Shown: positions 4,162 through 55,110, counted from the first letter of the stretch. The stretch is 64,000 nucleotides of DNA from Macrostomum lignano (GCA_002269645.1 NIVC01000628.1:124001-188000), one strand, 5' to 3'. The notes: generated from the sequence alone by a model not told the origin. Made by a program: numbers and translations.

Positions 4162-4194
<33 letters not shown>

Positions 4195-18391: not shown

Positions 18392-21300
18392 ATGGAAGCT
18401 CATTCTGCAACGGAGTCTGCAACAGCTGCTCAGCAGGAGCAAAAACCGGTGAGCAAATGCAGGAAGTGCAGCAGCCACCTTTTCAAATCAAGCGAAGCAA
18501 ATTTTGAATTTTTGAGAAGAGACATTTGTAACCTTTTGAATTAGGGAAAAATTGAGCTTACAAAAAATCTCTCGAATTATGCAAATCAAAGCAGACGTCA
18601 ACTTTATATGCTCTGAATTAAACCGACTGCAGTCGATAATGTGTAGAACGAGTCGACTAGAATGTGATAAAGTTCCTACCTTGGGCTTCTAGGGGGATAA
18701 TATTGGGATTTACGTCTTCAATGGGTCGAAAAACTGACGTCGATCAACTGTTGTTCCGCGTTTCTAGGCAACTGCTCCGACAAGTTGCCGATTGCAGACA
18801 GTCTGGTTCCTGGTTGCCCCACTGTTTGGGTAGCGTAAAATATACATACGTTGAAGCGTATATTTTTGCCAATTGTACTTTTTGATGGGATGCAATACGA
18901 ACGCGAAAATCATGCCAGAAGAGTGGAAAAAAGGGGAACTACCTACTATGCACTCGCTGCCAACCAAATAATTATCAATCTGCTCGTACAATAACGCTAG
19001 GCTTAACTAGATGTTTTTTGTTTTAAATAGTCAATGCAACGACAAAAGAACAGAATGCGAGGGCATGAGTATTTCTAGGAAAGCAAAATCATAGAGAAGT
19101 TTAAATTGGCACCATTTTTATGAGTGTACAAAGACTAGTAGGTAAAGTAGAGTCTACAAGTCTTTAGATTATTTCCTCCCCTTCTTCTTTCCGAAAAAAA
19201 GAACACAATGGCTCTCTCGACGATACTTCGCTTGGCCTTTCAACTACCACTTTACTAAAGGACATTGTGATGGTCGAAAATTGATATTAACTACAAGAAT
19301 TTATGTTTTCAGGTTTGTAGTGATATTTTAAAGTACGAGCGTAAAGAAACAAAGCACCGATCTTCTATGATACAGAAACTTCTCAGAGCTTTTGATATTG
19401 GTTCGTTTTCTTACCGTAAAAAACGTAATTACGGGTTGCGAACTCCAGAAAAGCTACCTGGACGAGCTGCCGTACTACTCCAACTACCAACTGGCCGATG
19501 ACGAGGTGCCCCTGGCCAAGTACCTGCTTCCCGCCGACTCTGCCGAAGTGCAGCGAGGTGTCGAGTCCGGCCGCTTCCCGACGCTCTCCGGCTTGGCGCG
19601 GCTGCAGCGGCAGCGAGGCCAGCCGCCCAATCCGTTGGGCGACGCGGCGAACGAGTCGCCGCCGGCTCCGTTTCCACCGCGACGCACCAAAACGGAGCTG
19701 CTCGAATCGAAGGACTTTACAGAGACGGACAAGTTCGCCGAGTCGGTGACGCCGTTGCCAAGCGACGACTGGGAGCAGCTGGCGGAGCGGCTGTTCGAGC
19801 AGAGCCGCAGCAACCTGGAGAAGGTGAGGGTCGCGTTCTGCTTCGCCTGCGCGCACCGGCAGCTGGCAGAGGTTGCTGAAGAAACTCCGGCATACAAAGC
19901 TATCCGGGAAAATGAGGCGACGGATGTATTTGAGAAGCTGCTTGGGTAAGTTCCATTTTCTGGTCGATGTTTTGGTCTTTTGAATCTTTACATAGAAACT
20001 TTTGACGTGAATATTTTAGTAGTAGAAAAGCAAAAAATGTTATTCTGTATAAGACCACTTGACTTACTTGACTTAGCTGCAGGGCTGTCCCGGAGGGGAC
20101 ACAGCGGGAAGGCGCGGGTGCCCATTCCGCTAGTCCCTGAACGGCCGACGCGTCGCTATGGACGGAGGGTTGGCGCCGCCCAGGGAGGTCTCCCAGTGTC
20201 GCCAGCAGCTATAATGCTCTCTGGAAAGGAGAGATAAGACCATAAGACCAGGTTACAAGTAGATTGTCGAATGAGTTCATCATATCCTCATAGGTGACCC
20301 TTAGACCCATAGACAAATAGGAAGCCCTCTAAGAGCGTAGTACAGAGGCAAACCCAAAGGAATCCTCACAGTCGACGTTTCAAAATCAATGTTCCATGCT
20401 GTACGCTCATTATTCAACGCTTCGGAATCATTATTTAAGGCTACTAAAATGCTTTCATGGTACAATGGTTAGTGGTGTATATGGTTTTGAGGTAGACAAT
20501 GATTCGTTTTTCACGAGTGGCTACGCGCACTCGTCACATTGGCCATTAATTTAAATTCTCGCTTCATAATAGCTGTACGAGTATTGATTGAATTGTCTAT
20601 AGTCGAAACAGGACTTTCAGTTAATGACCAGCCATTAAGCAAAGGTCATTACCGTGAAGTGACATTTCGATCAATAAAGTTTATTCAGCGAATATTAACC
20701 AAGACTATCTGATGATAAAAACATTAGTCAGTGTCTTTTACATTGACTTTAGCATTTCGATTCGTTTCCAAGGATTCGAAACTAATTTTTTCAGCTGTGG
20801 AAAAGTGCCAAACAAGAAGCTTTACGGCTACAAAAAGGGTGCGGACTCCGACTCTGGCGTAAAGGCCGAACTCGGTGGCTGTTGGTTCGCGTGCTACGTT
20901 GAGGGCGAATGGCGATTCGTTGACCCGCACTGGGGTGCTACGGCTGTGATGAACCACGATTCCGGCAGATATGGCTCCATTGACGATAAGGGCCGAGTCA
21001 GCAGTGCCAGAGAACAGAAGGGACAGAGCGTATTTTACCGTGATGAGTTTCACTTCCTGACTGATCCAGAAAGGCTGATCACAAACCATTGTCCACAACA
21101 GCATGATCTGGAGTGGCAGCTGCTAGCGAGGCCACTCAGTATTGAAGAATTTGAACTTTTTCCTCGCTACTTTGGAGGTTCTGCCATAGAAATGGAATTC
21201 TACGATCTGGAGCCGATAAACTATCCTTATAACGTCATCGTAGCAAAGCCGGGACCCGTTGAGATTCTGTTGAAGGAGCGATCGGGAGAACAGTATAGGT

Positions 21301-24300
21301 ACAGCGGGCAGCTAAAGATACACAAGAAGCACATCAACAGTGAATCAAAGACAGCCATTTTGAGTGCCCATCAGGAGAAGGCCTGCATCAGCAAGGGGAT
21401 CCGTGTGTCAAAGGATACCGTCAAGTTCATCTTTGAGCCACCATATCCAGGACAATACGCTCTGGAAATCATTCTCTGGCGTCAGGTCAGTGAGGTTACG
21501 CTAACTGGATGTAAGTTCCTTACGTATACGATCCACTGCCCTCAAAACTGGGAATCGGTCGATGTCATCCCGGAGGGCCAGGAAAATCTTCGCGAGTTCG
21601 GACCAGGACAAGACCTTCAACGAGCTGGACTAACCTCAGAAGCGCCCGGAGAGCTGAAGGCTGCCGACGGAGAGGCATCGCTGGAAATTGCACCGCTTGA
21701 TGAGGACGAAAAACCTAGTAGTGACCATCTGAGGTGAGAGACTATGAGAGCCACATTCTATACTGAGAAATCAGAAAACAAACAGTTAGGGCATGGCTAC
21801 TATTCAATACGATTCCCTGCAGACAACAAATCACCACAGCAAACAGACAATAATCAGTTAGAATCTTCATACGCTCGTAAAAACATCATTTTCTGTGGCA
21901 TAAGACCAGCAAGACATCATTCAAATATTGATTTTGTGGTTATACTAACCAACAGAAAAAAATGAATCAATAACCAGCCAATTAAAAAATCTGATTCCGA
22001 CAATATTTACATTGCAGAAGTCTGACGTGCCAAGCGCTGGGTCCGGACAACAAGCCCCTGCCGACGGGCAGCGTGCTCGTGTGGCGCGACGATCGCCGCA
22101 ACGCCTTCCTGTTCCTGGCGCCCGATTCCGGCTACTACGCTCTGGTGCTCTACGAGAACGGTCGGCCCGTCGGCCAGTTCCTGGTGGACGCCAGCAGCGA
22201 AGCCAAGGACGGCGCGAGCTTCCCGCTGCCCGACTGGAGCCGTGTCGGAGGTCTCGGACTCGCCGCTGTAAACAAGGCGGACGGCGGAGGCTGTCGGCTG
22301 GTGCCACTGAGCCACCAAACGCCGTACGTTCGAACCGAAGAGTTCGAGTTGGCGATGCGCTTCGGTGTTGATGGCGCAGGCGAAGAAGGCGACGCAGGTA
22401 TCGAATTGAAGTCGGAGATGCTGGGTGTCGGAGCGGACGGAGGGACCGAGTCGGTCGGCGACTACTCGTTAGTGAGCGGCGTCGAGGGCGGCGGCTTCGA
22501 GGTGCGGTGCCGGTTCCCGAGAGCGGGCCACTACCTGCTCCGCCTGTCGTTCCGAGAGAGCGGCGGAGACTGGCGCCCGTACTTCACGTACTTCGTGCGA
22601 GCTGTGGGCCAGCTGGACGGATCGGCATCCGCGTTTCCGAGCCTCGGTGCGGACTGGCCGGTCGGCGGAGCGCTCATCGAGCCGCTGGACCGCACGCTGT
22701 CCGTTGGACAGCCGACGCCGATATGCCTCCGTCTCGTGGATTCCGCAGCTATCGGCGCTGTGGAGGTGGTCGACGAGCGAAGCGGCAGTCGGGAGCCGTT
22801 GAGTCGCGACCCGCAGGACCCGCGGTTGTGGTTCGGGTCCGTGACGGCATCTGCGGGTAACACCGATGGAGCGAACGCTGCCGGGAGCGGCGGCGTGACG
22901 GTGGTGGCCCGTGTCAACGACGGCGTTGAGACACAGCTTGTAAAGTTCGACGTCGAGTCGGGAAGCAGCGCGGAGGCCAAGGCGGCGGCACTGCGCGAAG
23001 CTCGGGAGCTAAACGAGCGACGTCGGGTGGCCGAGGAGAATCGGCAGCGGAAGCGGGAGAACCGGCGCCGCCACGAAGAGGGACTGGAGCCGCTGCCTAC
23101 CCAGGTGCATTTTTTAATCCTACTTGCACATGTATCTCAGATTTTTGCGATTGATTAGTAAATAATGGCACCGATTGATCGCTTATTTCACAAGTTACGC
23201 TTTTACTTTTATCTTTATGTAGGATTCGCTTAAGAAATTGGCTGAAGCAGAAGCTGCTGCAAAAGCGGCGGCAGAGGCAGAAGCCGCAGCCAAAGCCAAT
23301 GCGGCGTCCAACAAGACGTTTGAAAGGGTGGAAGTGGCTTCAAAAAAATCGACTGACTCGAAGGCAGCTTCCAATGAAGCTGTGAAAGCGGCATCCAGGG
23401 CGGAATCTGCCGGTCAGGCGGTGACAACGGCGGGTGCCGCAGTAGAGGCGGCTGTTCAGTCAGCGGCCGAAGCTGCCAGGACTGCGGCTGAAGCTGCGAA
23501 GTCAGGTGAAGTTAAAAAAGCTGCCAAGGCGGCGAAATTAGCGGAGACAGCCGCTCTTGAAGCGAAATCTGCCGCTCAGGCTGCAGTGAGTGCCGCGACC
23601 GATGCGCGTACGGCCGCCAAAGCGTCTGCCGAGGCGGAACAAAAAGCCAAGACGGCGGCCGAGGCGGCGAGAAACGAAGCGGACCAAGCAGCAGTGGAAG
23701 CTGAGAAATCAGGAAATGACCAAACCAAAAAGGCCGCTCAAAATGCCGCAACACTGGTCGATGAGGCGGAAGCTAAATTGAAGACGTCAAAGGAGGCTTC
23801 AGAAAAGGCTGCCGCGGAAGCTGACGCCGCAAGTAAGAAGGCCGCGAAGGCCTCCTCAGATTCTGAGGCTGCAAGCAAATCGTTAGCTGAAGCGAATGCG
23901 GCAGCGACAACAGCTGCTGAAGCAGCAGCAGCGGCAAAGGCAGCCGAGGCAGAAGCTGCGGCGGCAGCGAAGGAAGAGGTCAAACTTCTCATTTCTCAGC
24001 TAGACGAGGCGCTGCTTAGTAGAAAAGTTGTTCAGTTGCGCAAGGCGATCAAGGCTTTGGAACCGCACGAGTTTGGATTGCACCGCTATCACGAAAGGAA
24101 ACTGCGGGAAGCTCGGCTGACACTGACTGCGCTGCAGAATAGGAAGGGTGCGTGAGGAACGACGAGGTTGTACAGTCCGATTTCAATGAGGAGTTCATAG
24201 TTTTGTGGTTTACATCCAGGTCAACATTCAGTTGAAATTCTCAATGAAGTCATACGAAAGCCTGATACAGGTATAGAGGATTAGAGACAAACCAGATTGG

Positions 24301-26062
24301 AACCTGATGATTTTGAATTCAGCTTTTGTTTATCTGATGCATCATTCTTGAGTTACCCGACCAGCTCACCTCCCACCCCTGCAGACATACGGGACGCCAT
24401 GGCGGACGCTCAGCGAGCCCGCAGCACCGACCGCCTGCGCGCGTTGGTGCACCGTCTGGAGGCTGAAGCCGAGTCGCAGCCGCTGACGGAGGCGCAGCTG
24501 GCGCTGTTCAGCGAGGACCTGCGGCTCGCCAGAGAGGCCATCCAGCGAGATGACAAGCTGAAGCGAATTCCCTCACACCGGCTGGAGATGAGTCCGAAGA
24601 GTCTGTCCGAGCTGAGGCAGTACAGCCGGCCAGTGGAAACGGTGCACCGAACGGTGCAGGCGCTGCTGCTGCTGCTCGGGTACTACGAAAAGCGCACACG
24701 GGTGAGCGATCCGCGCTTCATCATTTGCCGCTTCTATGGATTCATTCTGAGTCTGGGACAAACTATTGAAATGCCTTCATGTAAATAAGTACTTTCCTGA
24801 TTTAATCAACCACATTAGGGTGTCGAAAGGAAGTTTACAAGGTGTTTAGCAATTGCTTAACAATGTCCCTTTGGCGCAAATTTGAATTCCATTTAGTTTA
24901 ATGAACGTTTCTTGATTATTTATTAATTATATGGCCCTCTAAAACAGTGATCGAATTACACTACTGCAAGTAGTGGATATTGGTGGAGTGGATTATCATA
25001 CATTTTTTCTCCACCTGACAGAAATGGCCTCGCTGCCAACCGCTGTTGAAGAGCATCAACAAGTCTGTCGCGGACTTTCAGCCACGCTTCGTTGATCCGC
25101 GCATCGCTGCCCGAAGTTCGGAGATTCTGAGCAGTATCGACAAGCGCGAGATCGCCCTGCAGAGCGCTGCCGCCTTCGCTTTCTATGAATGGGTTCGTTC
25201 GAGTTCGAATAAGCAACGTTTTTGAAATTTCGTTCGTAAGCGGAATCGAAAATACGATCTTATCGCCCGAATATACGGGTACTTGGGCCTTGACCGCACA
25301 GCGTTCATGTGACAGTCGTTTCCTACAAATGAATTAAGCCGAAAATCATGATCTCACATGTTATCTTTACGTTAGACACCATGCATTAGCTACACCCATA
25401 TCATGCATCCCAAGGTTGGGAGTTTTGGCCTGATCTGACTAATCACGCACAAGTCGCAGACTCACCATCCGGAAGTTATTAGCGAAAATCGTAATTTCGA
25501 TTCCGTGGTTAATTGAGTAAATTATTTACAGGTCTTGCTTCATTGGGCCGATAAATAAGAAATTCTAGCTCTGAGTTTACTACATATTGGCCTATTAGTG
25601 TGTGAATTTTTGCTTAAATCTGAATTGAATTGAAGGGTCTCTAAAAATGTTTGAATGCGCTGGGGTAGAACCTAGAAACCCTGGGGCTACAGGGAACATA
25701 CTTGGATGGGATCTTCCCTGTGTGCCTGGTCGAACTGCTCTGACAGGATTTCGATAGCAGTCGGCAATTCGGGCTGCATTTTGTCGCTTACAGTAAGTTG
25801 ACATCCCACTTGGCTTCCGGTTCCGACTTCTCCGACTGAACCCCCTGTCTCAAAGAGTTTTGACTTTAATTTTCTAATATTCGAATCCTTGCAGGCAGTC
25901 AAAACAGCGAACTCGATCAAGGAGGCGTCAACACCGGAGACCTTCGTTCCGGCCAGCATGAAGCAGCAGATACTAATCCTTGGCGTCACCGAAGAAGAGG
26001 ACGCCACGTGGGACTTCGACGACGAAGGCATCCGCAGGAGGTCGTCCGTGGTGCCTAAGTAG
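18392..26062 (+). CDS. Hillarin/KY-like transglutaminase-fold protein, paralog A; exons 18392..18448, 19449..19945, 20795..21733, 22018..23104, 23223..24147, 24385..24701, 25022..25192, 25895..26062 (1386 aa)
   Basis: The eight exons join in phase (4161 nt). Motifs LEKVRVAF, GYKKG, WFACYVEGEWRFVDPHWG, EFHFLTDPE and WQLLARP are present, followed by beta-sandwich-like repeats, an Ala-rich helix, and a hillarin-like C-terminus (LSELRQYSRP..VQALLLLLG, AAAFAFYEW). Exon 1 is less certain. Confidence 0.8.
20513..20534 (+). repeat. Short dispersed hairpin element ACGAGTG-GCTACGCG-CACTCGT
   Basis: Perfect 7-bp stem with the same core as the copies at 15310 and 26769. Confidence 0.6.
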
Positions 26063-26768: not shown

Positions 26769-26819
26769 ATAATGGCCAGAAACACACGTGCTACGCGCAC
26801 TCGTGTTTTTCGCCATTAT
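26769..26819 (+). repeat. Longer copy of the same hairpin element (ATAATGGC...GCCATTAT)
   Basis: 8-bp terminal stem plus an imperfect inner stem around CTACGCG. Confidence 0.6.
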
Positions 26820-27617: not shown

Positions 27618-30600
27618 ATGGAAACTGCTGAGTCTGGCATGGTAAGTACTGGCACACTTAAATTTCAATTAGCATTGAGTCGTGTTTACAATCCGATTGT
27701 TGGTTTCTTTTCATTCAAATAATAATTCATTCATTGAACTTGAATGCATTCTTCGCTCGTTCCAAAACAAGATTTTGCCTCAAATTTTTTGTAAGTACCG
27801 GGTACGACTCTCAGACCCACCAGCTCGTCTTTGACTCCTCTTCTCCTTCATATTCATCCTCCATCCAACCCCCATGATACCTATCATGTCGTCTCCAAAC
27901 CTATCATATCGTCTCCATACCCTCTCGTCTCCATCTAGTCTCCATACCCTCCATCTAGTCTCCATACCCTCCATCTAGTCTCCATACCCTCCATTTAGTC
28001 TCCATACCCTCCATCTAGTCTCCATACCCTCCATCTAGTCTCCATACCCTTCATCTAGTCTCCATACCCTCCATCTAGTCTCCATACCCTCCATCTAGTC
28101 TCCATACCCTTCATCTAGTCTCCATACCCTTCATCTAGTCTCCATACCCTCCATTTAGTCTCCATACCCTCCATCTAGTCTCCATACCCTCCATCTAGTC
28201 TCCATACCCTCCATCTAGTCTCCATACCCTCCATCTAGTCTCCATACCCTCCATCTAGTCTCCATACCCTTCATCTAGTCTCCATACCCTCCATCTAGTC
28301 TCCATACCCTTCATCTAGTCTCCATACCATCCATATAGTCTTCAAACCCCTGAGTAGTCCCTGAGTTGGTCCTATAATATTTGGTTAGCAGACCTGTAAT
28401 TGAGCGCAAGGTTGCTTGCTGCTTTCAGTTAAGATGCGCTGAACAGAAATTTACAATTTAGAAATTTAGCAGTTTTGTCTGAGACAGTGAGAGAATGCTT
28501 TTTGTATCAATTGACTTAGGCGAGCTACCTGGACGACCTGCCGTACTACTCCAACTACCAACTGGCCGATGATGAGGTGCCCCTGACCAAGTACCTGCTT
28601 CCCGCCGACTCTGCCGAAGTGCAGCGAGGCGTCGAGTCCGGCCGCTTCCCGACGCTCTCCGGCTTGGCGCGGCTGCAGCGGCAGCGAGGCCAGCCGCCCA
28701 ATCCGTTGGGCGACGCGGCGAACGAGTCGCCGCCGGCTCCGTTTCCACCGCGACGCACCAAAACGGAGCTGCTCGAATCGAAGGACTTTACAGAGACGGA
28801 CAAGTTCGCCGAGTCGGTGACGCCGTTGCCAAGCGACGACTGGGAGCAGCTGGCGGAGCGGCTGTTCGAGCAGAGCCGCAGCAACCTGGAGAAGGTGAGG
28901 GTCGCGTTCTGCTTCGCCTGCACGCACCGGCAGCTGGCAGAGGCTGCTGAAGAGAAGCAACCGTATGAAAATATTCGACTTGGAAACTGCAGCGAAGTTT
29001 TTGCCGCGCTACTTATGTAAGATTGCCAAGCCATACTAGAAATCGTTCACTCGCACCAATGTTTCAGGTTCCAGAATAAATAAAAATGCAATATTTGACG
29101 CGCTTTCAGCAATTATCTACGAGTGTGTCACTAAATTTGGTAACCCACAGTAAGACAGGCCTGCATGACATTCGAGTTGTGCATGCCAACTATTGTTAAG
29201 TGGGCTGAGGACCCAACTGCAAGGCCATGAATGATACACGTATTTCACCAACTCTCTTTGATCATACATGCGCACAATCGGCACAATCAGCACTGAGCCT
29301 CAGTGCGGCCTTGCCAAGCCTCCAAATTTCATCAGCGCGTCGACCGCATGTGCCTGCATCAGCTGTGACTTCGTTGGTCACTGGCCTTCACCGAGGCGAA
29401 GCTTCTGAACATTCAACAGGTGACACCAGGTAACTATGGACACCCTGTTGCAACAACAACAACAAAGTACTTCACCCGCCAGCCACACAGTGGCTAGAAA
29501 GAGGGGAAAAGTCAGAGAGCGCGTCTCTGGGCCATAGCCCTCAGAAAGTCACAACCCCCAGCTTGGTCCAGGGCGCCAGCATCGGTCAAAAGCCTATCAG
29601 GGTATCTCGCCGTTCGCCCTTGGCCTCGCCTGCGCGGTCCCTGCAGCTTGAGCAGCAGCACCTCGTGCAGCGGCTCAGGGCAGCGAGCCTCCGACCGGAT
29701 GACGTGGCCAGCCAGTCGAAGTCGCCGCAGGTCAGAAGGCCGCATCATGCCCTTGTGTAGAGGCGTGCCCTCGTGTAGAAAGCGGCGTTGGTCTCGCTGC
29801 CGGAACCGCTGCGCACTCCGAAAGCCGCACGCAGCATGGCCGCATGCGCAGCGTCCAGCTGCCTCTCCTAAGCGTCCGTCAGGGTCCAGATCTCGGTGTT
29901 GTACAACAAGACAGTCTCAACGACTGCCTGAAACAGCCGAGCTTTGAGCCCGTCATCCAGGGCCTCAGAATGGAGCGCGGAGCGCACAGAACGAAACGCG
30001 GCACAGGCCAGGCCTTGTCTTCTCACCAGGTTGTCGGCAACGTCCGGCACGAGGCCGCCGAGGTACAGGAACCGCTGGCAACGGGTAAGCATGATTGCCT
30101 CCCGGGCAGCGTCTCGGTAATTGATCTCGACAGGCAGGTTGGAGGACACCGTGAAGACTACCGTCTTCCGTGCGTTCAGCATGAGGCCGACTCGCGATGC
30201 TGCTGCCGTCAGGCCATCCAGCAGCCGCTGAGCGCCTTCAGCCGACGATGACAGCAGCGCGAGGTCGTCCGCGCAGCCGAGAATGGAGAGCCGCTTCTCA
30301 GGGTGCCACCGACTCATGCGTCTTCGCAGCAGGAAGCCGTTGGGTAGGCCGGTCCTCAGTACCCAATCCAGACCAAGCACAAACAGGAAAGGCGCCAGAG
30401 TGTCACCCTGCAGCACGCCTGACGACGTGCTAAATTGGTCCGACAGTCCATCTGGCGTCATCACAGAAGCGGTCGTATCCTGGTACATCAACATGATGGC
30501 GGAAATCAGTTGGTCCGGTTGCAGATTTCTCTATTTTCGCTGATCAAGCCTCAGTGGGCGAACCTCAACTGCTCGACATCCTCAGCTAGTCTCTCAAGCA

Positions 30601-33600: not shown

Positions 33601-35395
33601 CTGAGGCTGCAGCCTTCGATGCGGAGATCGCCGGTTCTCCGCTACCCGACGAGGCTGCAAAGTTTGCATCATCAGCGTCGCACGAGGCCGAAGCTGCTGC
33701 CAGGGCAGTCACCGAGATCGCTGCAAAGTCAGCCACCGAGGCTTCCATCGCGAAGAGGGGAGCCCGCATGGCGGCTGCTTCGGCGGAGACGGCAGCAAAG
33801 TCAGCTGCGGTTGCGGCTGCTGCAGCGCAGGAGGCCACAGAAGCGATTGCGGCGGAAAAAGCTGAGCTGAATTACCTGATTGCTGAGCTGGACGTGGCCT
33901 TGTTGGACCGAAAGTTAACTCGGGTGCGCAAGGCCGTTGAGTCGTTGGAGGCTCGCGAAAAGGAGCTGCGCGGCAGTCAGTCGAGTAAGCTGAAGGAGGC
34001 ACAACAGACTTTAACGGCGCTACAGAATAGAAAAGGTTCTGTTTTTCTGTTGACAAAACAAGTGGCAGTTGTGCTTAAATTCTGATGTATTACTGAAGGT
34101 AGCTTGTATTGTAAAACCGTCACATTAATTTGGCCAGTGACAATTTCGATCCCGTGCTCTATCCAACCTCCGCAGACCTTCGGGACGCCATGGCGGACGC
34201 TCAGCGAGCCCGCAGCACCGACCGCCTGCGCGCGTTGGTGCACCGTCTGGAGGCTGAAGCTGAGTCGCAACCGCTGACGGAGGCGCAGCTGGCGCTGTTC
34301 AGCGAGGACCTGCGGCTCGCCAGAGAGGCCATCCAGCGAGATGACAAGCTGAAGCGAATTCCCTCACACCGGCTGGAGATGAGTCCGAAGAGTCTGTCCG
34401 AGCTGAGACAGTACAGCCGGCCAGTGGAAACGGTGCACCGAACGGTGCAGGCGCTGCTGCTGCTGCTCGGGTACTACGAAAAGCGCACACGGGTGAGTCA
34501 AGGACTACCCAAGTAGAAGGGCGGGAAACTACATTTTCGGGGAACTTTTGAGAGGCTGGTTTTATTGAAGAAATACATACCGGAGAATGGAGGTTTTCAT
34601 TTTTTCAGCGTAAAATTTGTAATGATCCATTTGATGGCGGACAGACCCAATGTTCATCTTTTAAAACGACTTGATTTTCTGTTAGTTCTATAGATATTCG
34701 TAGAGCTTTTTTGTTCAGAAAGTTTGTATTTTGTGTTAATTTTATGAGCGCAATCCTAATTGCATGACCTGTGTCCAAACATCGTAAAAATGACACAACT
34801 TAATTCATTCGCAATTTCGCATTGAGGGCGGAGAAGCTTTTTAAATGCTAGGTCGGTGTGTAGTGTACAGAGTGCAGAGCTTGTGTTCTATAGATTGTAC
34901 TGTGCAGTCATTTTGCTGCCCCTCACTGGGTCTGTTTACTCGTGAACTTCTCCACGTTACCAACAGAAGTGGCATCGCTGCCAGCCGCTGTTGAAGAGCA
35001 TCAACAAGTTTGTCGCAGACTTTCAGCCGCGCTTCGTTGATCCGCGCATCGCCGCTCGAAGTTCGGAGATTCTGGGCAGCATCGACAAGCGCGAGATCGC
35101 CCTGCAGAGCGCTGCCGCCTTCGCCTTCTACCAATGGGTTCGTTTGAGGAATTTTTCTTGACAATGAGAGTGCAGCATGGGAGCCTGACTCCTTCATCAA
35201 TCAATTTTACTCCAGGCGGTCAGGACCACGCAGTCCATCAAGGATGCAGCCTCAGTGGACAGTTTTGTTCCAGCCAGCATGGTTCAGCAAAGGTGGATCC
35301 TTCGGGTCACGATGGAGGAGGACTCTGCGTTGGACTTTCAAGACAAGGGCATTCGCAAGAAGAGTGCACGTCGTCCTCGGACTTCAAAAATTTGA
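27618..35395 (+). CDS. Hillarin/KY-like paralog B; exons 27618..27641, 28520..29016, 31280..31918(?), 31947..33033, 33123..34035, 34176..34492, 34967..35137, 35216..35395; possibly disrupted at 31920
   Basis: Exon order and phases match paralog A, and exons 2, 4, 6 and 7 have identical lengths (497, 1087, 317, 171 nt). Exon 3 runs into TAG at 31920-31922 unless a 28-nt intron is removed. Confidence 0.72.
27930..28330. repeat. 20-bp minisatellite (TCCATACCCTCCATCTAGTC)
   Basis: About 20 copies in paralog B intron 1. Confidence 0.96.
29288..29421 (+). repeat. Left arm of an approximately 135-bp imperfect inverted repeat
   Basis: Aligns to the reverse complement of 30719..30851 at roughly 80-85% by eye. 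Confidence 0.85.
29448..30520 (-). mobile_element. 5'-truncated, inactive RTE-clade non-LTR retrotransposon fragment (RT and thumb regions, 3' (TTG)n tail)
   Basis: Motifs GVLQGDTLAPFLF, CADD in place of YADD, FLYLG, ETVLLY..EIWTLT and RRLRLAGH. It has an in-frame TAG at 29868-29870, a later frameshift, and a (CAA)n tail at about 29453-29465. Confidence 0.9.
30719..30851 (-). repeat. Right arm of the approximately 135-bp imperfect inverted repeat
   Basis: Pairs with 29288..29421. Confidence 0.85.
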
Positions 35396-36596
35396 ACTTT
35401 AAACTCACACTTCTTTGCTAAAAGTAGACAAATAGTATAGCATTTCCCAGTCAATTTGGTCCGCGCCCCTGATTTCCTTCTCCGTCAGCAGTGACAAAGC
35501 TGGCGCTACTTTCCGAGTCACTCGTTATTGCTATTGCTTATTAACGGCTTTTAAAATGAATACGCGAAATAAGTGCCCCCAGGATTAAATTGAGTGGAAC
35601 GAAACAGCATATTTGGCCATAGACATACCTCTAGTGACGGCGGAATGAATTGGAATTCTCTATTGCGGATTAAATTGAGTGCTTCTAGGACCAAATTGAC
35701 CGAGAAATGCTATTTTTCAAAACTGAATTTTCAAACGCATTGAAATCATGGGAAATCATCCCAAGAGCAATTTTGCAGTCAAATTTATCAATCAATTGAG
35801 ACTACGATATTCAAACCTGTCGAATTCCAAATGATTTTGTAAACATTACAGAAGATTTTGACTTTTTCATCGTTTTAGCAACATTCGTGTACTGTACGTG
35901 CTTTAAATACCTGCCGAAATTTTTTTCTGTGCAAACGAAAGTCCAAGACTGCCACAGACAACTTTTGGGCTTTCGACCACAGACAAAATTTTGTCGGGTA
36001 TTATAGAATTTAACCATCACGAGTGAACGTGAAGGAATCCCATTGTTAGATGAGTCATCGTGAAGCAATGCACAAAACCGTGCAGGAATGCATTTCTTCG
36101 CCTAATGCTTTTTCAGTGAGATTTTACCATACTCGTTGACATCCACTCATGCACGCAAAAGCGTGCAAGAATGCCATTCCTGCATGGAGAATCAGCCGAC
36201 AATGAGACATGGACGCCATAGATATTTTTGAGCTTATCGAGGCTGATATAGCCTGGCTAAAAACACATAGCCGCAAATAATGAGACCAGTTTGATGGGTG
36301 CTGCACCACAATGCTCTAGATTTGCGACCTTCAACAAAGATCAGATTGCTGAAAAGATCGACGCCGCAGTGCCTGCCAATACGAAGAGGAAGAAGAAATG
36401 GGCCGTCAAGCCAAATGAGCCGTCAAGTCCAGACATGAGGCCATCCTGAACGGCGGACACACTGGATTGCTGGTGCTCAAGCCAATTGAAGAGTGAAGCA
36501 ACGCCGAATGGGCCTACTAGCTGCGGATGATTTGAGGCAGGACTCAATTTGAGACCAGTTACATGAAATCTGACCATAGACTACGCGAAAGTAAGG

Positions 36597-36654
36597 CATC
36601 CTACCATGGACTTCTATACTTAGCATGCTAAGTATAGAAGTCCATGCATCCTAC
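36597..36654. mobile_element. Perfect 42-bp palindrome (36605..36646) flanked by the 8-bp direct repeat CATCCTAC; ultra-short TIR-only element
   Basis: CATGGACTTCTATACTTAGCA|TGCTAAGTATAGAAGTCCATG is self-complementary with no mismatch. CATCCTAC occurs at 36597-36604 and 36647-36654. Confidence 0.75.
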
Positions 36655-36963
36655 GAAGAAGAAAGGCCAAGTTAAATAAGCCATTAGTCGGTTTTAAACG
36701 GTTTCAACGGATTGGGCATTTCAGCCAAAAGTTGGGTAATTGAAATAATGATGTGACAGAATATATTTGAATGAGAATTCTCGGTGTAAAATGTGCGCGA
36801 TGATTCATCAGTCTACACTAATGCGTTGCGTCACTGCACGGGAATATCGTGAGTCAGTCTGTGGAGTGTGGAATATAGTTAATACAATGGCTGCAAATTT
36901 CATCGGCATTGCAAGCAGAAGCAATAGCAGTTTAGAATGATGAGCGGCACGCTTAAGCAATCT

Positions 36964-38009
36964 TTATACACCAGGCGTCTTCCAGCACATGACGATATGG
37001 CGACCAATCTTGAAGAAAAATGACAGCCCAGGCTCGTGGCTATAGCTGGCCCAGTACTGTCCCGTAACCATGACAACGTGCCAAAGCTTGCCGAACTGGC
37101 CGTCCAGCTTCTGCTTCAGCCGGCCAGCGACATCTTTCTCATCTTTGCCGCGTCTCTGGGCGTCGCGAAATATTTCAGTCAGGTCCACCTGCATCTCTAG
37201 GCCCATGCTGGAGGCGATGACGGTGACGTCCTCCGGCAGCCGGTTACTCCTCAGACACTCGGCCTTGAGCTGGTTGAGTCGGTAGATTCGCCTAGGTTAG
37301 GAAAATGCGATGGGTTGCTTTCGTGCGTTACCACGAGTTCATTCGACGCATTGCACGAAGTTGGGTTTTGCGAGCTAATGATGACGCAGCAATATGTGCT
37401 CTAAAGAATAAAAAGTTCAATTGAATCATGAAAAACAGTATACAGTCTTACGCTTGCTTCGGATTGAGCCCCAGAACGTTGCAGTATTCGTCCAGTGTAA
37501 TCGCGCCGTCATCGTTCTCATCAAATAGCTTCATCCATTTCTGAAAAAGCGAATTCGGTAAATGCCATGACTTGGTTGTTTGTGTGTAACTATTACTCAA
37601 TACTATCTGCGAGTCTGATGAATGCAGCTAAATAACATTTCAGCGACCATTTTACCTACCTTGATACCAACATAAGATCTGTTAGATCAGTTTAAACCCT
37701 TAAATACCGGAGTCCGGATCACCGTGTGAATAAGTACACAAAGCGTTGGAAACACTGGAAGCTACAAACCTCGCCAAAATTGGCCTCAAACTGGCTGCTG
37801 CTGGTCATGTAGGCCGCTAATTCATCCGGTGTGATGGACTCGCTCCGATCCTTGTCGACCGCAAAGAACGCATCAAGGAAGGGATTCTGTGCAGCTGCCT
37901 CCTCTGCTGCGACGCGTCCCGGTGACAACGGCGGTGGAGCAGGCGATGTTGAGCCCGAAGCGGAGGCAGTGGAGTGCGCTGGCGACACAGAGAGCGACAT
38001 GCTTCGCAT
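36964..38009 (-). CDS. Tegument allergen-like (TAL) protein: two EF-hands plus a dynein light chain-like domain; exons 37770..38009, 37452..37540, 36964..37291 (218 aa)
   Basis: EF loops DKDRSESITPDE and DENDDGAITLDE. DLC-like region LKQKLDGQFGKLWHVVMVTGQYWASYSH..FFFKIGRHIVMCWKTP. GT-AG introns in phases 0 and 2. Confidence 0.9.
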
Positions 38010-39991
38010 ATAGAAATATAGCTAGTAGCCTTATTCCCAGCGGGTGCACTGCGTTTTCCACTACTGCTTTGTATTAAACCCTGGCTCTCCATGAGCAATG
38101 ACTAAGCGCAGTCTAAAAATAAGCTGCAGAGCAGCGCTGTGTTCTCTGCATGGTCGCGATAATAAAAATGCCACTCCTGCAGAAGAACCCAGATTTAATT
38201 TGTGATGCGAGATTAAGGCTGAGTCCCGATCAAGAACGGATCAAGGGTAGCTGGGGCCAGGACAGTTCAGGACTTCGCGTAAATAAAACATGCAAGTTTT
38301 CTATACTAGCCCACTTTTAACCACAATGCTTGGTTGCTCCAGCTTCTCTGAGCAGTTCTTAAGCTGATCATCCCTCATCCGCAATCTGTCTGCTGGCAAC
38401 CTAGAGTCTCCACTGTTAAATTAATTATTTAAATGTTTCTTAAGTTACCCCTACCACCCGTTTCGCCTGATGACACTCCTAACCAATTTAGTAAATGGAC
38501 GTTAGCGACTGCTAGAAAAAACAAAGGAAAACAAACTTCGAAATGATTGACTCAAGGACCTTGGATTGACTCATCCCGTGAATCGACAAATCCAATATAA
38601 GATTGTTTAAAAGTAAATTTATGTCCATGTAGTGATAGAAAGCTTAGATATTACTACAAATATTCTGCACGTTGCCTTTAAATCCTTTGACTGCCTGGGA
38701 TCTTAAGTTTGGATATCCAGTTGTAAATTAGTTGCTGTTATGTTTTTTTTCTTTTCTCTAGGAATTTCTGCTGCTATATAGTGAGCTAAGTCGTTTTTAT
38801 ATACAGCAAGTTTTAGCCAAAGCATTTGAATTAGCGCATGTTTAGATGCATATTTTTTAATCAAAAACTATTGAATTGAAAGTAAATATTTAATTAAGAT
38901 TCCGTTTCCTTCTGTCTAATATTCGAATGTGTAGAGCAGTGCCAAAGACTCCAATCAATATTTCAAAAGAATCTAAAAGATTTTCGCTATTTAGTAGTTT
39001 AAATATTTTTGCTAGAGCGACAATCTAGAAAAAAGTTCAACAACGTTGAACTTTTTTGTTTGTCTTTTTGCAACTAAGGTTATCCGCGGCAAATTGACGT
39101 AGGAGCACATTAACAGGCAAGTCAGGGTTATTAACACTTTGAAATGGTACCGCATGTCGTGAAACAGGTCACTGATTCACTGTTATTAATTTTATACCTA
39201 CTTCCCGTTCTCACCCAGAGTAGTTTTTTACTATAATATCTAAATATACTAAATCTCTAATATTTGTATGCTTGTCCATAACTCTCTAGTATTAGTAAGA
39301 TATACTATTACTATGTTTCAAAGCACCGCACCACTTAGCTGATATTAGCAAAAATAAAACTTAAGCAATTCACGTTGTCGTTTTGTTGATTATATTTTAG
39401 AATTTACATTTGCTACTTGCTACAAGTAAATATAGTATATGCATTTATAATTTCGAAATGCTGTTTTTAAGGCTGATTATTAGAGTTCTTAGGGGTGAAT
39501 ATGTGTTGCAAACTAGTCACGTGCAATCAGATACAATTAGATTGTACTCTTTCCAATTTTTGGGTTGGCTTGTTTTGCCTCTTTTTATTTCAAATTTTGT
39601 ATTGCATTTTCATCCTCTTTCTGTATTACTTATTTTAAGACCTAAAGCATAGTCCTAAAAATTAAGGACTTTAGCTTATTGTTTTCTTAACTTAAAAATT
39701 TTAAATAGGCTTTTAAAATAGATTTTCTAATTCAAAGAGCTAAAATATTTAAACGGAGTTAGAATATCATTTTCATCTTTAATAATTTTAACCAACATAT
39801 ATAAAAACAATACCGTTATAATATTAATAACTTTGTTGTAACTGGAGCTATGAGTATTTTCCTATACTAAAAACTGAAATACGTTAAATTACCATGTATA
39901 ACAAAACGCTTGCTTTCCATGTTATGCCTTAGTTTCGCATTTTTATAGTGAATGATGATACACGTGTGTTTTCATTTCTGTTCCAAAGAAT

Positions 39992-42972
39992 ATGCCAGAA
40001 GGAAACATTTTACAAGTACTAGACTACTACAAAAATTATGAGCTAGAAGGAGATGAAATTCCATTAAATAACTATCTTTTGAGTTCCCCAAAAGGATTTC
40101 CAACTTTGCGCAGCCTGGTTGACAGTCAGCTGCAAGCTGCCAAACCGAGTGCGGCGAGGGCCAACCAGCCACAGCCAACTCCGTGTAGCAGACGAAAAGA
40201 AGAGCTGTTTCAGATTCAGAAATTCACCGATATTGATCAGGCAGCAGAGTCGGTGCAACTGAACTGGCAGGACGGCTGGGAGACGCTTTCTCAGAAATTG
40301 TTTCGGAATTCGACCGGCGATCTCGAAAAAGTGCGCTCTGCTTTTGTGTTTACCTGCAGAGACTGGAACAACGGACTGCCAGCTCGCAACAAAGAGAGCT
40401 CAGCGTATAGGCTTATTCGAGAGAGAAACTATGCAGAGATTTTTGAGAACTTGGTCAGGTAAGGACTGCTCATTCTGAAGAGTTCAGGTTCAGTCATTCA
40501 GTTTGTTAAGGAAATTAATTTTTGTAGCAAATTGTGTGTAAAGATTGTTGAAGAAGAGCACGTGAAGCCTGTATGTACGATTTGATGCGAGAGTGCCTTG
40601 AAAGTGCTAAATTTTTATTTTAGAAAAGAGACTATCGCATTGGGAGTGAAACCTAGTAGATTAGCCTCTTAGCAGACCAGTGTCTTAGTAAACCAGTGTC
40701 TTAGTAGACCAGTGTCTTAGTAAACCAGTGTCTTAGTAGACCAGTGTCTTAGTAAACCAGTGTCTCAGTAGACCAGTGTCTTAGTAGACTAGTGTCTTAG
40801 TAGACCAGTGTCTTAGTAAACCAGTGTCTCAGTAGACTAGTGTCTTAGTAGACTAGTGTCTTAGTAGACCAGTGTCTTAGTAAACCAGTGTCTCAGTAGA
40901 CCAGTGTCTTAGTAGACCAGTGTCTTAGTAGACCAGTGTCTTAGTAGACCAGTGTCTTAGTAAACCAGTGTCTCAGTAGACCAGTGTCTTAGTAGACTAG
41001 TGTCTTAGTAGACCAGTGTCTTAGTAAACCAGTGTCTTCGTAGACCAGTGTCTTAGTTGATCAGTGTCTTAGTAAACCTGTGTCTTAGTTGATCAGTGTC
41101 TTAGTAGACCAGTGTCTTAGTAAACCAGTGTCTTAGTAAACCAGTGTCTTAGTTGATCAGTGTCTCAGTAGACCAGTGTCTTAGTAGACCAGTGTCTTAG
41201 CAGACCAGTGTCTTAGCAGACCAGTGTCTTAGTAGACCAGTGTCTTAGTTGATCAGTGTCTTAGTAAACCTGTGTCTTAGTTGATCAGTGTCTTAGTAGA
41301 CCAGTGTCTTAGTAAACCAGTGTCTTAGTAGACCAGTGTCTTAGTTGATCAGTGTCTCAGTAGACCAGTGTCTTAGTAGACCAGTGTCTTAGCAGACCAG
41401 TGTCTTAGCAGACCAGTGTCTTAGTAGACCAGTGTCTTAGTTGATCAGTGTCTTAGTAGACCAGTGTCTTAGTAAACCAGTGTCTCAGTAGACCAGTGTC
41501 TTAGTAGACTAGTGTCTTAGTAGACCAGTGTCTTAGTAAACCAGTGTCTTAGTAAACCAGTGTCTTAGTAGACCAGTGTCTTAGTAGACCAGTGTCTTAG
41601 TAGACCAGTGTCTTAGTAAACCAGTGTCTCAGTAGACCAGTGTCTTAGTAGACTAGTGTCTTAGTAGACCAGTGTCTTAGTAAACCAGTGTCTTCGTAGA
41701 CCAGTGTCTTAGTAAACCAGTGTCTCAGTAGACCAGTGTCTTAGTAGACCAGTGTCTTAGCAGACCAGTGTCTTAGCAGACCAGTGTCTTAGCAGACCAG
41801 TGTCTTAGCAGACCAGTGCACCGAGAGTCTTGAGGCTCGATCGCACCTCCATAAAATGGAGTAAATTTTTGCGTGATCACGCAACTTGTAAATATTCTTT
41901 AGTCCCTTTGTGCGCGAGTGCTGCGACTTGACGGCTCATTTAGCGTAGCGGTGCACTAACCAAGAGTGACTTAGTGAGCCTTTTCCCATATTAATGAAAG
42001 TATAGCAAACGCAGGAAAATATTTCAGAGCCGGAGGCGTACCAATAGAACGAATCGAAGGCTGGAAGAAGTCTGCAGACTCCAAAGTTGGCTTCCATGTC
42101 AGACGATCGGTAAATCCTTGGCACGCCTGCTTCGTGAGCGGAGAATGGCGACTGGTTGACGTCCATTGGGCTGCCTCATCGGTATTCAGCAGCCGCTCTG
42201 GTAGATACCAAGAGCTGGACAAAGATGGCGAGTTGTCCCAGACCCTGACAGCCAGTGAGACCCCTCAGATTGAGGAGAAATTTGGCCGTAACGAGTTTTT
42301 CTTTCTAACTGATCCCGAGAAGCTGGTAATGAGCCACTACCCGGACAATAGGAGCTGGCAGCTGCTGAAGAAGCCCATCGCGAAGCTCGAGCAGTTCGAG
42401 CAGATGCCGCACTATTTTGCCGGCTCTGAGCAGGCCATGCCGCACTGCTGGCAGGTGGAGCCGCTCAACTATCTGAAAAATGTCATTCTAGCTGAAGAGG
42501 AAGGCCGAGTTGAGATTCTGTTCAGGTAATTTATTTTACAATTTTGGACGTGCAAACTTTTCAACAGCTCGTCGTACACCCGTACAAAGTGCCGATTGGA
42601 ATGGACATTGCAGAGTGCCTGACGCCGAGCTGCTTCGAGATTTAGAATTCGATGCCAAGGTCAGCATCGCCAGCAGGTGCTTGTCGAGTTCTGATGCGCC
42701 GGCATCCAACAGGTTGAAACATGGCAGAATCATTCGCTGCGACCGGCTTGGTCCTGCACCATCGGACATTGTCCGGGTTGTGTTTCGGTCACCTTGCGCT
42801 GGCAAGTTCGCTCTGACAGTTCGAATTAAAAAGAAGTATGGAGGCAGCGGCTGGGCTCGACTGGCCACCTACATTGTGCACTGTCCTGTGGTAGGTGTCC
42901 CGTGGTTTGTCTGCCTCAGTCTGCCTTTCCTTAGTCTAGGGAAAGCCATGTGTTTCTCTGTCATCAGCATTG

Positions 42973-43063
<91 letters not shown>

Positions 43064-45132
43064 TATCATCATCATCATACTGTGCAATTTTATTTTCAAC
43101 ATTACGAGCGTATTAGAGATCGCCTACTGAAGAGTAGCAAGTAAAGAATTTTAAGCGACTTATGTTGCGTGCGAAAGGCGCACTAAAAGTTTTGAATTAT
43201 TAAAGTTTATTACAATTTATAAAAAAATTGAAACCATCTGTTTCAAAAAGCAGTCCTTGTCTATCGTGAGTTACACTTGCACTTTCCTGCTAATCTGTGA
43301 AATTATATTGTTAATGCAGGTATCTAAAGAATCAAAATTATCAAAGTCATCTCAACCGCCAAATCCAGAACCAGAGTCAGAGTGCGGCCCAAATCTCAAA
43401 ACAAGGATCAGTGATCATAGATCCGCCAAATCAAGACACAAATCCAAAGCCATATTCAAGGCCAAATTCAGATCTAGATGCAACTCCAAAACCAGAGCCA
43501 AAACCATACATCTGGAGCCAAAACCGGAGTTCAAGCCCTTTGGGTCGAAAGTTTCCAATGGGAAATTTGACCAGAGAGCAACTAGCTCAGTTGCGCAGCT
43601 ACCCGAAGCCGCCAAAATGGGAATTCAAGGCGGTCAAAGCCATACTGCTCATGCTGGGCTTTTACGAAGGACGGAGCAACGTGAGTGGCAGGACGGTTTT
43701 GTAGGGTGGCAACAATTTCAAGCATACGAAACGTTTGCTAATTTAAATTTCAGAAATGGGTCCGCTGTCAGCAACTAATCTCTGCCATACCTCAGGCGGC
43801 CAACGATTTAATTATCGAATCCGTTCATCCGGAAATCGCTGCCAGATGCCTGCAACTCGTCCAGTCGAAATCTGGTACGCCAGCGGCCAAGGATAACCCG
43901 GAAGAGAAAGCTTCGTATATCTTCAGGGAGTGGGTGAGTTCGCGATGCAATTGCGATGTGACTGAGGGTCAGGGCATGAGATAGGTGTCGGGAGGGGCAG
44001 AGGGGCAGCGCGTGAGGTGGGTGTCGGGAGGGGCAGGGGAGCACGTGGAGGTGGGTGTTAAGAGGGGCAGAGAGGCATGGCAGCGCGTGAGGTTTCGGGA
44101 GGGGCAGGGGGAGTGCGTGGAGGTGGGTGTTGAGAGGGGCAGAGAGGCATGGCAGCGCGTGAGGTTTCGGGAGGGGCAGGGGGAGTGCGTGGAGGTGGGT
44201 GTTGAGAGGGGCAGAGAGGCATGGCAGCGCGTGAGGTTTCGGGAGGGGCAGGGGGAGCACGTGGAGGTGGGTGTTGAGAGGGGCAGAGAGGCATGGCAGC
44301 GCGTGAGGTTTCGGGAGGGGCAGGGGGAGTGCGTGGAGGTGGGTGTTGAGAGGGGCAGAGAGGCATGGCAGCGCGTGAGGTTTCGGGAGGGGCAGGGGGA
44401 GTGCGTGGAGGTGGGTGTTGAGAGGGGCAGAGAGGCATGGCAGCGCGTGAGGTTTCGGGAGGGGCAGGGGGAGTGCGTGGAGGTGGGTGTTGAGAGGGGC
44501 AGAGAGGCATGGCAGCGCGTGAGGTTTCGGGAGGGGCAGGGGGAGTGCGTGGAGGTGGGTGTTGAGAGGGGCAGAGAGGCATGGCAGCGCGTGAGGTTTC
44601 GGGAGGGGCAGGGGGAGTGCGTGGAGGTGGGTGTCGGGAGTGGCAGGGGAGCGCGTGGAGGTGGGTGTCGGGAGTGGCAGGGGAGCGCGTGGAGGTGGGT
44701 GGTCGGGAGTGGCAGGGGAGCGCCTGGAGGTGGGGTGTCGGGAGGGGCAGGAGGAGCGCGCAAGGTGTGGGTATCGGGAACGGGTCTTTAGTTTCAATTT
44801 ATTCGCTGGAATAAAATTTCTGTCAAAACTTTATGTATGCAATCTAACATTAAATTCTCAAGGTTGAAAAGAACGCCAACGCAGTCAAGGAGGTGACGCC
44901 GCCCGGCGAGTTCAAAGCAGCTGACAAACAGCGGCAGGTGCAGCTGTTCGGCATCACACCCGAGGAGGAGGCCCATTGGGACTGGGAGGACAATATAAAA
45001 AAGTCTGAAGTGGCCCAGAAATTCATCTGCTTTTGCGACTATTGTCACGTTGCGATCTATAATAACGATTTAAAGATCCACCTGCACTGCAACGTGTCCA
45101 GAGCGAATGGCTTGCGCAAAAATGCACTGTGA
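39992..45132 (+). CDS. Hillarin/KY-like paralog C (shorter, divergent); exons 39992..40458, 42028..42525, 42614..42890, about 43330/43369..43680, 43754..43933, 44863..45132
   Basis: Motifs DLEKVRSAF, YAEIFENLV, GWKKS, WHACFVSGEWRLVDVHW, FFFLTDPE, WQLLKKP, LAQLRSYPKP..VKAILLMLG and KWVRCQQL. It lacks the equivalents of A/B exons 4 and 5. The acceptor of the fourth exon is ambiguous. Confidence 0.72.
40670..41818. repeat. 16-bp minisatellite (ACCAGTGTCTTAGTAG), about 70 copies
   Basis: Seen directly in a paralog C intron. Confidence 0.97.
42963..43078. repeat. (CAT)n trinucleotide microsatellite
   Basis: Intronic; source of the poly-I, poly-H and poly-M ORFs. Confidence 0.97.
43985..44760. 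repeat. G-rich 72-bp minisatellite with degenerate flanking subunits
   Basis: Period of 72 bp between 44101 and 44173; lies in the last intron of paralog C. Confidence 0.95.

Positions 45133-46845: not shown

Positions 46846-55110
<8,265 letters not shown>

Follow-up and report, generated by a model that had tools for sequence, protein, structure and literature searches.

The DNA analyzed here is a stretch of 64,000 nucleotides from the flatworm Macrostomum lignano (GCA_002269645.1, NIVC01000628.1:124001-188000; hereafter the window, numbered from its first letter), which carries on its + strand, between positions 18392 and 45132, a tandem cluster of three spliced genes that we call A (1386 amino acids, aa), B (1275 aa) and C (634 aa). 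The interval opens with the ATG of gene A at 18392 and closes with the stop codon of gene C at 45132, and the surrounding DNA is eukaryotic and rich in introns. Each predicted protein combines a transglutaminase-like core domain (TGc) of the KY/hillarin type, from which the catalytic Cys and His have been lost, with a C-terminal module homologous to the domain by which dynein heavy chains attach to microtubules (microtubule-binding domain, MTBD). Gene models were built from long stop-free segments joined at frame-keeping GT/AG junctions common to the paralogs, so that splicing is predicted; Pfam searches on single exons gave almost nothing, and the spliced models were used instead. The genes and the modules of A and C are laid out as follows.

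18392-26062, + strand: gene A, eight exons (18392-18448, 19449-19945, 20795-21733, 22018-23104, 23223-24147, 24385-24701, 25022-25192, 25895-26062), 1386 aa, a single open frame with one stop and with intron sites and phases in common with B and C
19449-21733, + strand: A exons 2-3, KY-like transglutaminase-fold domain and first Ig-like_KY domain, aa 20-497
22018-23104, + strand: A exon 4, beta-rich, aa 498-859 (a 362-aa exon), ending in a highly charged helix-like stretch
23223-24147, + strand: A exon 5, Ala/Glu/Lys-rich (about aa 865-1110, 27-47% Ala), then a heptad-like helix up to the MTBD
24385-26062, + strand: A exons 6-8, coiled-coil lead-in, dynein-type MTBD and conserved C-terminal tail
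27618-35395, + strand: gene B, eight exons (27618-27641, 28520-29016, 31280-31918, 31947-33033, 33123-34035, 34176-34492, 34967-35137, 35216-35395), 1275 aa as modelled, exon 1 (8 codons) being tentative
39992-45132, + strand: gene C, six exons (39992-40458, 42028-42525, 42614-42894, 43472-43680, 43754-43933, 44863-45132; the exon 3/exon 4 junction taken from the public M. lignano model P0005), 634 aa; modules in order TGc, Ig-like_KY, a Pro/Lys-rich linker of ~40 aa, and MTBD

Introns interrupt A, B and C at the same codon and in the same phase at three places, namely within TGc after '..VF..LL', inside the C-terminal domain after 'YYEKRTR/FYEGRSN', and after 'YEW/REW', and because these positions are common to all three we regard the genes as paralogs. 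The alternative that A, B and C are one long gene was rejected, since stop codons terminate A and C, and all three units open with the conserved N-terminal motif that begins public M. lignano proteins. The window proteins are 90-100% identical to annotated M. lignano proteins, with P0001 and P0003 as counterparts of B, and P0005, P0181 and P0182 matching C at 90-98% identity. Window positions 32025-46439 align in the same order with a second contig of M. lignano, NIVC01000952.1 (locus L001), the main aligned blocks mostly sharing 95-99% DNA identity, so that the B-C tandem order is reproduced in an independent assembly. Comparison of the window with this contig gives C a ratio of nonsynonymous to synonymous divergence (dN/dS) of 0.16 and the 3' part of B one of 0.28, by which measure of the coding sequence both are under purifying selection.

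All three proteins end, over some 130-150 residues, in a conserved module with the consensus ..L.ELR.Y..P......V.ALLLLLG.YE.R..KW.RCQ.L....................IAAR.........SAAAF.F.EW.., and it is this module that is homologous to the dynein heavy-chain MTBD. Its core was placed in each gene as follows.

24600-25192, + strand: MTBD core of A, aa 1241-1331 (family hidden Markov model match aa 1210-1353)
34391-35137, + strand: MTBD core of B
43579-43933, + strand: MTBD core of C

Because the module resembled the dynein stalk tip by eye, the relationship was tested with a profile, A5, made from a 30-sequence alignment of C-terminal modules, to which A, B and C match with E-values of 1e-43, 6e-41 and 3e-27. 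Searched against the PDB, A5 matched 81 dynein heavy-chain sequences, including cytoplasmic dynein-1, dynein-2, and inner- and outer-arm dyneins, with a best E-value of 2e-12 for a yeast MTBD construct of 141 residues, aligned over its residues 16-127, and 12 of its 30 members weakly touch the Pfam family PF12777. An AlphaFold model of the last 185 aa of A, computed with the A5 alignment (predicted local distance difference test score, pLDDT, 91.6; predicted template-modelling score 0.83), shows a CC1-like lead-in helix of ~25 residues, a bundle of short helices, a return helix of ~20 residues and a short helical tail. When this model was submitted to Foldseek, ranks 1-18 were all dynein stalk or MTBD structures (probability 0.75-1.00, E 6e-3 to 0.1), and the isolated MTBDs 6rzb_C, 6kjn and 6kio were matched with probability 1.00 and TM-scores of 0.61-0.67. 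On the strength of the profile matches and the predicted fold we consider homology of the A/B/C module to the dynein MTBD established, and we infer that the module would bind microtubules.

The hidden Markov model (HMM) of the module matches ~45 of 150 TGc relatives, usually at the C-terminus; in full-length, single-module proteins of the local sequence set used below it lies at or near that end, the exceptions being fragments and multi-module models (P0010, P0079). The module is missing from the domains that Pfam assigns to full-length relatives at E<=1e-3, and a literature search combining hillarin or KY with dynein MTBD or 'MTBD-like' found no description of such a module, the original hillarin papers lying outside the reach of that search. 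The dynein MTBD depends on a long antiparallel CC1/CC2 stalk. A, B and C resemble the dynein stalk tip (PF12777; PDB 6kjn, 6rzb, 3err) in profile homology over the whole MTBD and in a predicted short-helix bundle entered via a CC1 helix, but they differ in having neither an AAA+ motor nor a long stalk, in a return helix of ~20 residues followed by a family-specific tail, and in carrying the domain at the C-terminus of a non-motor protein. Consistent with this, neither AAA nor dynein motor domains are detected by Pfam in the three proteins, and the model of the A module contains no long antiparallel CC1/CC2 stalk leading to an AAA+ ring. In dynein, the MTBD consists of six helices, H1-H6, which bind the tubulin intradimer interface (PMC6629372).

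We think it unlikely that the MTBD fold has here been re-used away from microtubules, for instance on septin or actin filaments, on some other protein, or as a coiled-coil cap. Positions conserved between the module and dynein are mostly core positions (E-I-R-S..P, LLG, W, S.A..F/Y.W) and so tell little about the binding surface, there is no long CC2, and Drosophila hillarin has been reported to act with the septin Pnut (PMC3718969, PMC3081291), all of which would suit such a re-use. Nevertheless, the fold and profile matches among the solved structures searched are to the dynein MTBD or stalk, and the module is strongly conserved across phyla and usually C-terminal. Moreover, the closest M. 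lignano paralog of A outside the cluster, P0007 (1384 aa), has three calponin-homology (CH) domains of the actin-binding type (E 4e-54) at its C-terminus in place of the MTBD, a swap that fits a cytoskeletal anchor; if P0007 is real, the same pseudo-enzyme module would be joined in some proteins to a filament binder of microtubule type and in another to one of actin type.

The N-terminal region was analyzed with a family HMM built from A, B, C and the paralog P0002, and aligned to the 150 best representative relatives, including mouse Ky. An exhaustive HMMER search with the family profile of the TGc and Ig region returned 3289 matches at E<1e-3; a stricter limit of E<1e-10 leaves 976, among them proteins named 'hillarin-like', 'HIL-like', 'ltd-1-like' and 'kyphoscoliosis peptidase-like' as well as mouse Ky, so that the homology of A, B and C to the KY/hillarin family is far beyond chance. 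An AlphaFold model of C, used over its TGc core only, where pLDDT exceeds 90, gave as its best Foldseek match FAP246 (E 3e-15), with transglutaminase 2 and protein 4.2 as the next matches. In Pfam, Ig-like_KY (PF23265) passes its cut-off of 27 in A, at 28.5 bits, and reaches E 6.5e-4 in C, under the cut-off, and Transglut_core in B stays below its cut-off of 23, at 16.1 bits.

Canonical members of the family carry a Cys-His-Asp triad in the motif V[C]xGY..LF ... [H]AWN ... [D]xTWG, which in mouse Ky reads V[C]DGYAGLF ... [H]AWNAV ... LV[D]STWG. Alignment of the window proteins to the family HMM placed the corresponding codons as listed here.

19908-19910, 20877-20879 and 20922-20924, + strand: A, E173, G213 and D228 (motifs ENEATDVF / GGCWFAC / VDPHW)
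28979-28981, 31362-31364 and 31407-31409, + strand: B, L162, G202 and D217 (motifs LGNCSEVF / GGVWFAC / VDPHW)
40421-40423, 42113-42115 and 42158-42160, + strand: C, E144, N185 and D200 (motifs ERNYAEIF / NPWHAC / VDVHW)

The Cys, His and Asp columns are thus occupied by E/G/D in A, L/G/D in B and E/N/D in C, and none of the three retains the triad of an active KY-type peptidase or transglutaminase. This bears out much of what an earlier sequence-only reading of the locus had proposed, namely a tandem cluster of KY/hillarin-like transglutaminase-fold genes that keep the Asp and have lost both the His and the nucleophile; the HMM alignment to canonical members finds no Cys or His of A, B or C at the canonical columns. 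The same reading had noted the absence of an N-terminal LIM domain, and indeed Pfam detects none in A, B or C, nor does a scan for LIM-like Cys/His patterns in any + frame of 14000-46000, a scan that does detect the LIM domain of the relative P0090. The description of the pseudo-enzymes as undescribed is not supported: inactive TGc proteins (Cyk3, hillarin, LTD-1) are a recognized subclass (PMC3718969), and among the aligned domains of the 150 best representatives only 5 are C-H-D (mouse Ky and four others), the remainder including K-H-D, R-S-H, T-N-N, K-N-H and x-G-D classes. A dead triad is the rule in the hillarin-like family, and already known to be so.

It is very improbable that these domains are still enzymes with a shifted or non-canonical active site. 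Candidate residues can be named, such as, in A, the Cys that adjoins the lost His (GGCWF), in B, a Cys lying three residues beyond where the nucleophile would be (LGNCSEVF), and the His in C (NPWHAC) and in VDPHW, but they differ among A, B and C and across the family (C/V/P after the His column; A/C/Y at nucleophile +3). In a local sequence set comprising the three window models and ~190 fetched proteins, the MTBD module was found in 63 sequences, and the TGc of all 63 is without Cys and His at the triad columns, the replacements being diverse, which points to relaxed constraint on catalysis.

Within the same local set the module was not found in the C-H-D (KY), K-H-D (two-domain, hillarin-type) or T-N-N/T-N-Q (LIM-bearing, LTD-1-type) classes. 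Because the MTBD occurs in this set only with a doubly inactivated TGc and these other classes are without it, we place the window genes in a separate, unnamed branch, which on sequence evidence is composed of a doubly inactivated TGc, one or more Ig-like_KY domains, a spacer and an MTBD. The same architecture is present in Lottia, Pinctada, Argopecten, Pecten, Mya, Haliotis, Patella, Ruditapes, unionid mussels, Owenia, Helobdella, Lingula and three Branchiostoma species, as read from the 150 best representatives of one search. Judged from these alignments, the subfamily of hillarin/KY-like pseudo-transglutaminases to which A, B and C belong is an old bilaterian one, found in Spiralia and amphioxus, and the lineage-specific status that had been suggested for them does not hold.

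An origin of A, B and C as undescribed flatworm-specific pseudo-enzyme scaffolds of modular length, having no particular cellular anchor, is accordingly improbable. A word-indexed protein search with window sequences returns M. lignano only, the genes are without functional annotation, and the difference in modular length between A/B and C is real; that search, which included a 17-sequence alignment, is uninformative on phyletic range. The exhaustive HMMER search, by contrast, finds thousands of relatives, the TGc-Ig...MTBD layout recurs among molluscs and annelids as well as in a brachiopod and amphioxus, a subclass of inactive TGc proteins has already been described, and the MTBD homolog would itself be a specific anchor. 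Two further features were seen among the relatives. Many of those outside the window (P0006, P0010, P0013) begin MGC(G/N)xS, a start that is likely, from its sequence, to be an N-myristoylation/palmitoylation signal and that A, B and C do not share; and in Lottia P0006 and Pinctada P0010 the whole TGc-Ig(-MTBD) unit is repeated three times.

Like the hillarins (leech Hillarin, Drosophila D-Hillarin and the bivalve 'hillarin-like' or 'HIL-like' proteins), A, B and C have a KY-type TGc fold followed by Ig-like_KY and an incomplete triad, and the mollusc 'hillarin-like' P0029 and 'HIL-like' P0031 share with them the same C-terminal MTBD-type module. Unlike hillarin, they are without LIM and have one TGc each. 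Even when search filters are disabled, the family HMM detects exactly one TGc per window protein and not the two tandem W180/TGc domains of hillarin proper, whereas the K-H-D relatives have two. These two-domain K-H-D proteins (P0011, P0014, P0017, P0018, P0021) resemble classical hillarins, keep His and Asp, and have no MTBD module. Like the LIM-bearing T-N-N proteins, they fall into classes other than that of the window genes, and A, B and C are not one-to-one hillarin orthologs. The TGc and Ig-like_KY core is likewise homologous to that of KY (kyphoscoliosis peptidase), a muscle protein of vertebrates, mouse Ky (P0087) being matched at E 3.8e-28, but Ky keeps C-H-D and is without the MTBD module. 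Among solved structures the nearest to the TGc and Ig region, in sequence (E 1.3e-4) as in fold, is FAP246 of the Chlamydomonas central-apparatus C1 (PDB 7n6g, 7sqc), which is also a microtubule-associated, non-enzymatic structural protein; it differs in keeping His at the aligned position (nHCW), and the match, at ~14% identity, is confined to TGc/Ig, with no MTBD homology seen.

The length of the proteins between head and C-terminal module varies by whole modules, as had been noted from the sequence. The spacer measures ~40 residues in C and ~700 in A and B, where it is made up of extra Ig-like and Ala-rich helical parts, the Ala-rich and heptad-like helix accounting for ~250-370 residues. 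Neither the 362-aa beta-rich exon nor the 308-aa Ala-rich exon of A and B is present in C. The presence of these extra segments in A and B was thus seen correctly, but the beta-rich parts are Ig-like modules of the KY family that match post-Ig regions of relatives. Exon 4 of A gives a weak Ig-like_KY match on its own (E 0.084, Pfam, single exon) and in phmmer searches matches the post-Ig regions of many relatives, including Branchiostoma proteins and, weakly, mouse Ky 469-603; by these matches it is homologous to regions behind the first Ig-like domain in other KY-family proteins. Exon 5 encodes 308 aa in both A and B, of which the first ~245 residues contain 27-47% Ala (from composition windows of 60 residues on the translations), and it has no counterpart in C.

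Gene B departs from A in ways that bear on whether the cluster holds three working genes. The features concerned are these.

31878-31946, + strand: deletion scar in B, where ~104 Ig-like_KY core codons and an intron are missing relative to A and P0001
19452-19882 in A and 28523-28953 in B, + strand: A/B similarity tract, 92-98.6% identity, as are the next three
22011-23098 in A and 31940-33027 in B, + strand: A/B similarity tract
24371-24706 in A and 34162-34497 in B, + strand: A/B similarity tract
25018-25203 in A and 34963-35148 in B, + strand: A/B similarity tract

By tblastn, residues 195-298 of P0001 have no counterpart between 31877 and 31942, while the B exon immediately upstream of the gap is 99.5% identical to P0001. 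To keep B in frame, splicing has to remove the 28 nt of a GT..AG segment at 31919-31946; introns elsewhere in the A, B and C models measure 73-2262 nt, and a 28-nt intron at the exon 3/exon 4 junction is implausible. B may therefore be a damaged copy, a deletion-bearing allele or an assembly artefact. Similarity between A and B is also strikingly uneven. In blastn comparisons exons 2, 4, 6 and 7 share 92-98.6% DNA identity (exons 2, 4 and 6, 96-99%), whereas exon 3 shares 65-76% and exon 5 and all introns are dissimilar, exon 5 showing no DNA similarity at all; C has no DNA-level similarity to A or B. The similarity tracts start and stop within a few bases of exon boundaries, and synonymous divergence (dS), exon by exon, is 0.019, 1.37, 0.076, 0.69, 0.037, 0.29 and 1.38, that is, 0.02-0.08 in exons 2, 4 and 6 and saturated in exons 3 and 8. 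A recent duplication of the whole gene was rejected, since identity of 96-99% in exons 2, 4 and 6 stands beside exons 3, 5 and 8 and introns that are either unrelated or saturated. The pattern fits repeated gene conversion, limited to exons and acting among those still similar, and possibly mediated by cDNA.

These data leave a less probable but by no means negligible alternative, in which the cluster is partly decaying and B is a pseudogene or crippled copy kept A-like through gene conversion, leaving two functional genes and not three. Its grounds are the loss from B of the ~104 Ig-like_KY codons present in A and P0001, with readthrough dependent on the 28-nt 'intron', the tentative first exon, and the conversion-type mosaic of low and saturated dS. 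Set against this, the remaining exons of B are open and have canonical splice sites, its 3' part has a dN/dS of 0.28 relative to the second M. lignano copy, and an assembly error or an allelic difference could account for the deletion.

Between B and C, on the - strand at 36967-38021, lies a gene encoding two EF-hand motifs followed by a dynein-light-chain (LC8-type) domain, whose 218-aa ortholog in the M. lignano contig is assigned EF-hand_7 and Dynein_light by Pfam. We take this layout to match that of flatworm tegument-allergen-like (TAL) proteins, and its position adjoining MTBD genes may be a coincidence. In L001, positions 3725-6035 insert ~2.3 kb between B and the EF-hand/dynein-light-chain gene that is absent at window 36045-36052; this is an insertion/deletion difference between copies or haplotypes. 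The introns of B and C contain the following tandem arrays.

27929-28349: 20 nt x 21
40667-41818: 16 nt x 72
42961-43078: TCA x 39
44004-44760: G-rich, 72 nt x 10.5

The last of these yields a long spurious open reading frame (ORF) and a strong GC skew at 44-46 kb, and similar minisatellites occur, for example, at 2400-2950, 3650-4600, 51300-52000, 52400-53400, 56650-57150 and 59000-60000. Further ORFs of the window were assigned by eye, and we presume them to encode an acyl-CoA synthetase/fatty-acid transport protein-like protein (2-2073, +), an NAD-dependent epimerase/dehydratase-like protein (4817-5929, -), a secreted LamG/pentraxin-like protein (13877-14914, +) and a Miro-type mitochondrial Rho GTPase-like protein (50571-53764, +).

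We consider it fairly probable that A, B and C are microtubule-anchored pseudo-enzyme adaptors of differing reach, and not enzymes. The MTBD would hold the protein constitutively on the microtubule lattice, its affinity not being switched by any ATPase, because in the predicted absence of an AAA+ ring and with only a stub of CC2 an ATP-driven registry switch would be impossible. The spacer would set the distance to which the N-terminal module projects, and the dead TGc/Ig head could serve as a protein-binding platform that binds a partner without modifying it, by analogy with the yeast cytokinesis protein Cyk3, whose TGc is without the catalytic Cys and acts by binding Rho1-GDP (PMC3718969). 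The likeness to Cyk3 is meant as a functional analogy only, and Pfam finds no Cyk3-type SH3 domain in A, B or C. For hillarin and LTD-1 a connection with septins or with actin-like patterns is on record (PMC3718969).

Candidate sites of action in the cell or body are cilia, sperm, neurons and the division apparatus. M. lignano is densely ciliated, and since the nearest solved relative of the head belongs to the ciliary central apparatus, cilia or sperm would be a plausible site by analogy. The broader proposal, that a conserved bilaterian family has split a true dynein-type MTBD from its motor and fused it to a dead KY-type transglutaminase/Ig module, is put forward tentatively, at somewhat less than an even chance.

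Several points weigh against the reading as microtubule-anchored adaptors. The models of A, B and C are splice predictions from DNA, and B, lacking most of its Ig-like_KY domain, may be non-functional. Neither the C-terminal region of A alone nor a profile of A, B and C retrieves a dynein from the PDB, a chance match to TTK being the only one, and Pfam does not call PF12777 on A, B or C, so that the dynein link needs the family profile. The Foldseek E-values of the MTBD model (6e-3 to 0.1) are modest, though the matches are uniform, and with a predicted return helix of only ~20 residues the module may behave differently from dynein. The gene model of P0007, generated automatically, could have arisen by artefactual fusion, and the phyletic spread draws solely on the 150 best representatives of one search.

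The dead triad, to which attention had been drawn from the sequence, is not new in kind, and the most informative part of these proteins is the C-terminal dynein-type MTBD, which that reading did not include and which is what would matter. The dynein MTBD is usually discussed as the tip of the motor stalk only, with its affinity set by coiled-coil registry. If the proposal is correct, A, B and C would represent the first recognized non-motor use of the dynein MTBD and a new class of microtubule-associated proteins with a reach tuned by spacer length, and would offer a naturally 'constitutive' MTBD on which the binding of this fold to tubulin could be studied, in an animal that is amenable to RNAi and transgenesis. 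The uncharacterized 'H domain' of hillarin might be explained as well, and a hillarin-type role would then be sought at the axon hillock, the cleavage furrow and cilia. For the many proteins now annotated as 'uncharacterized', 'KY-like' or 'hillarin-like', the finding would provide a concrete, testable function, that of microtubule anchoring.

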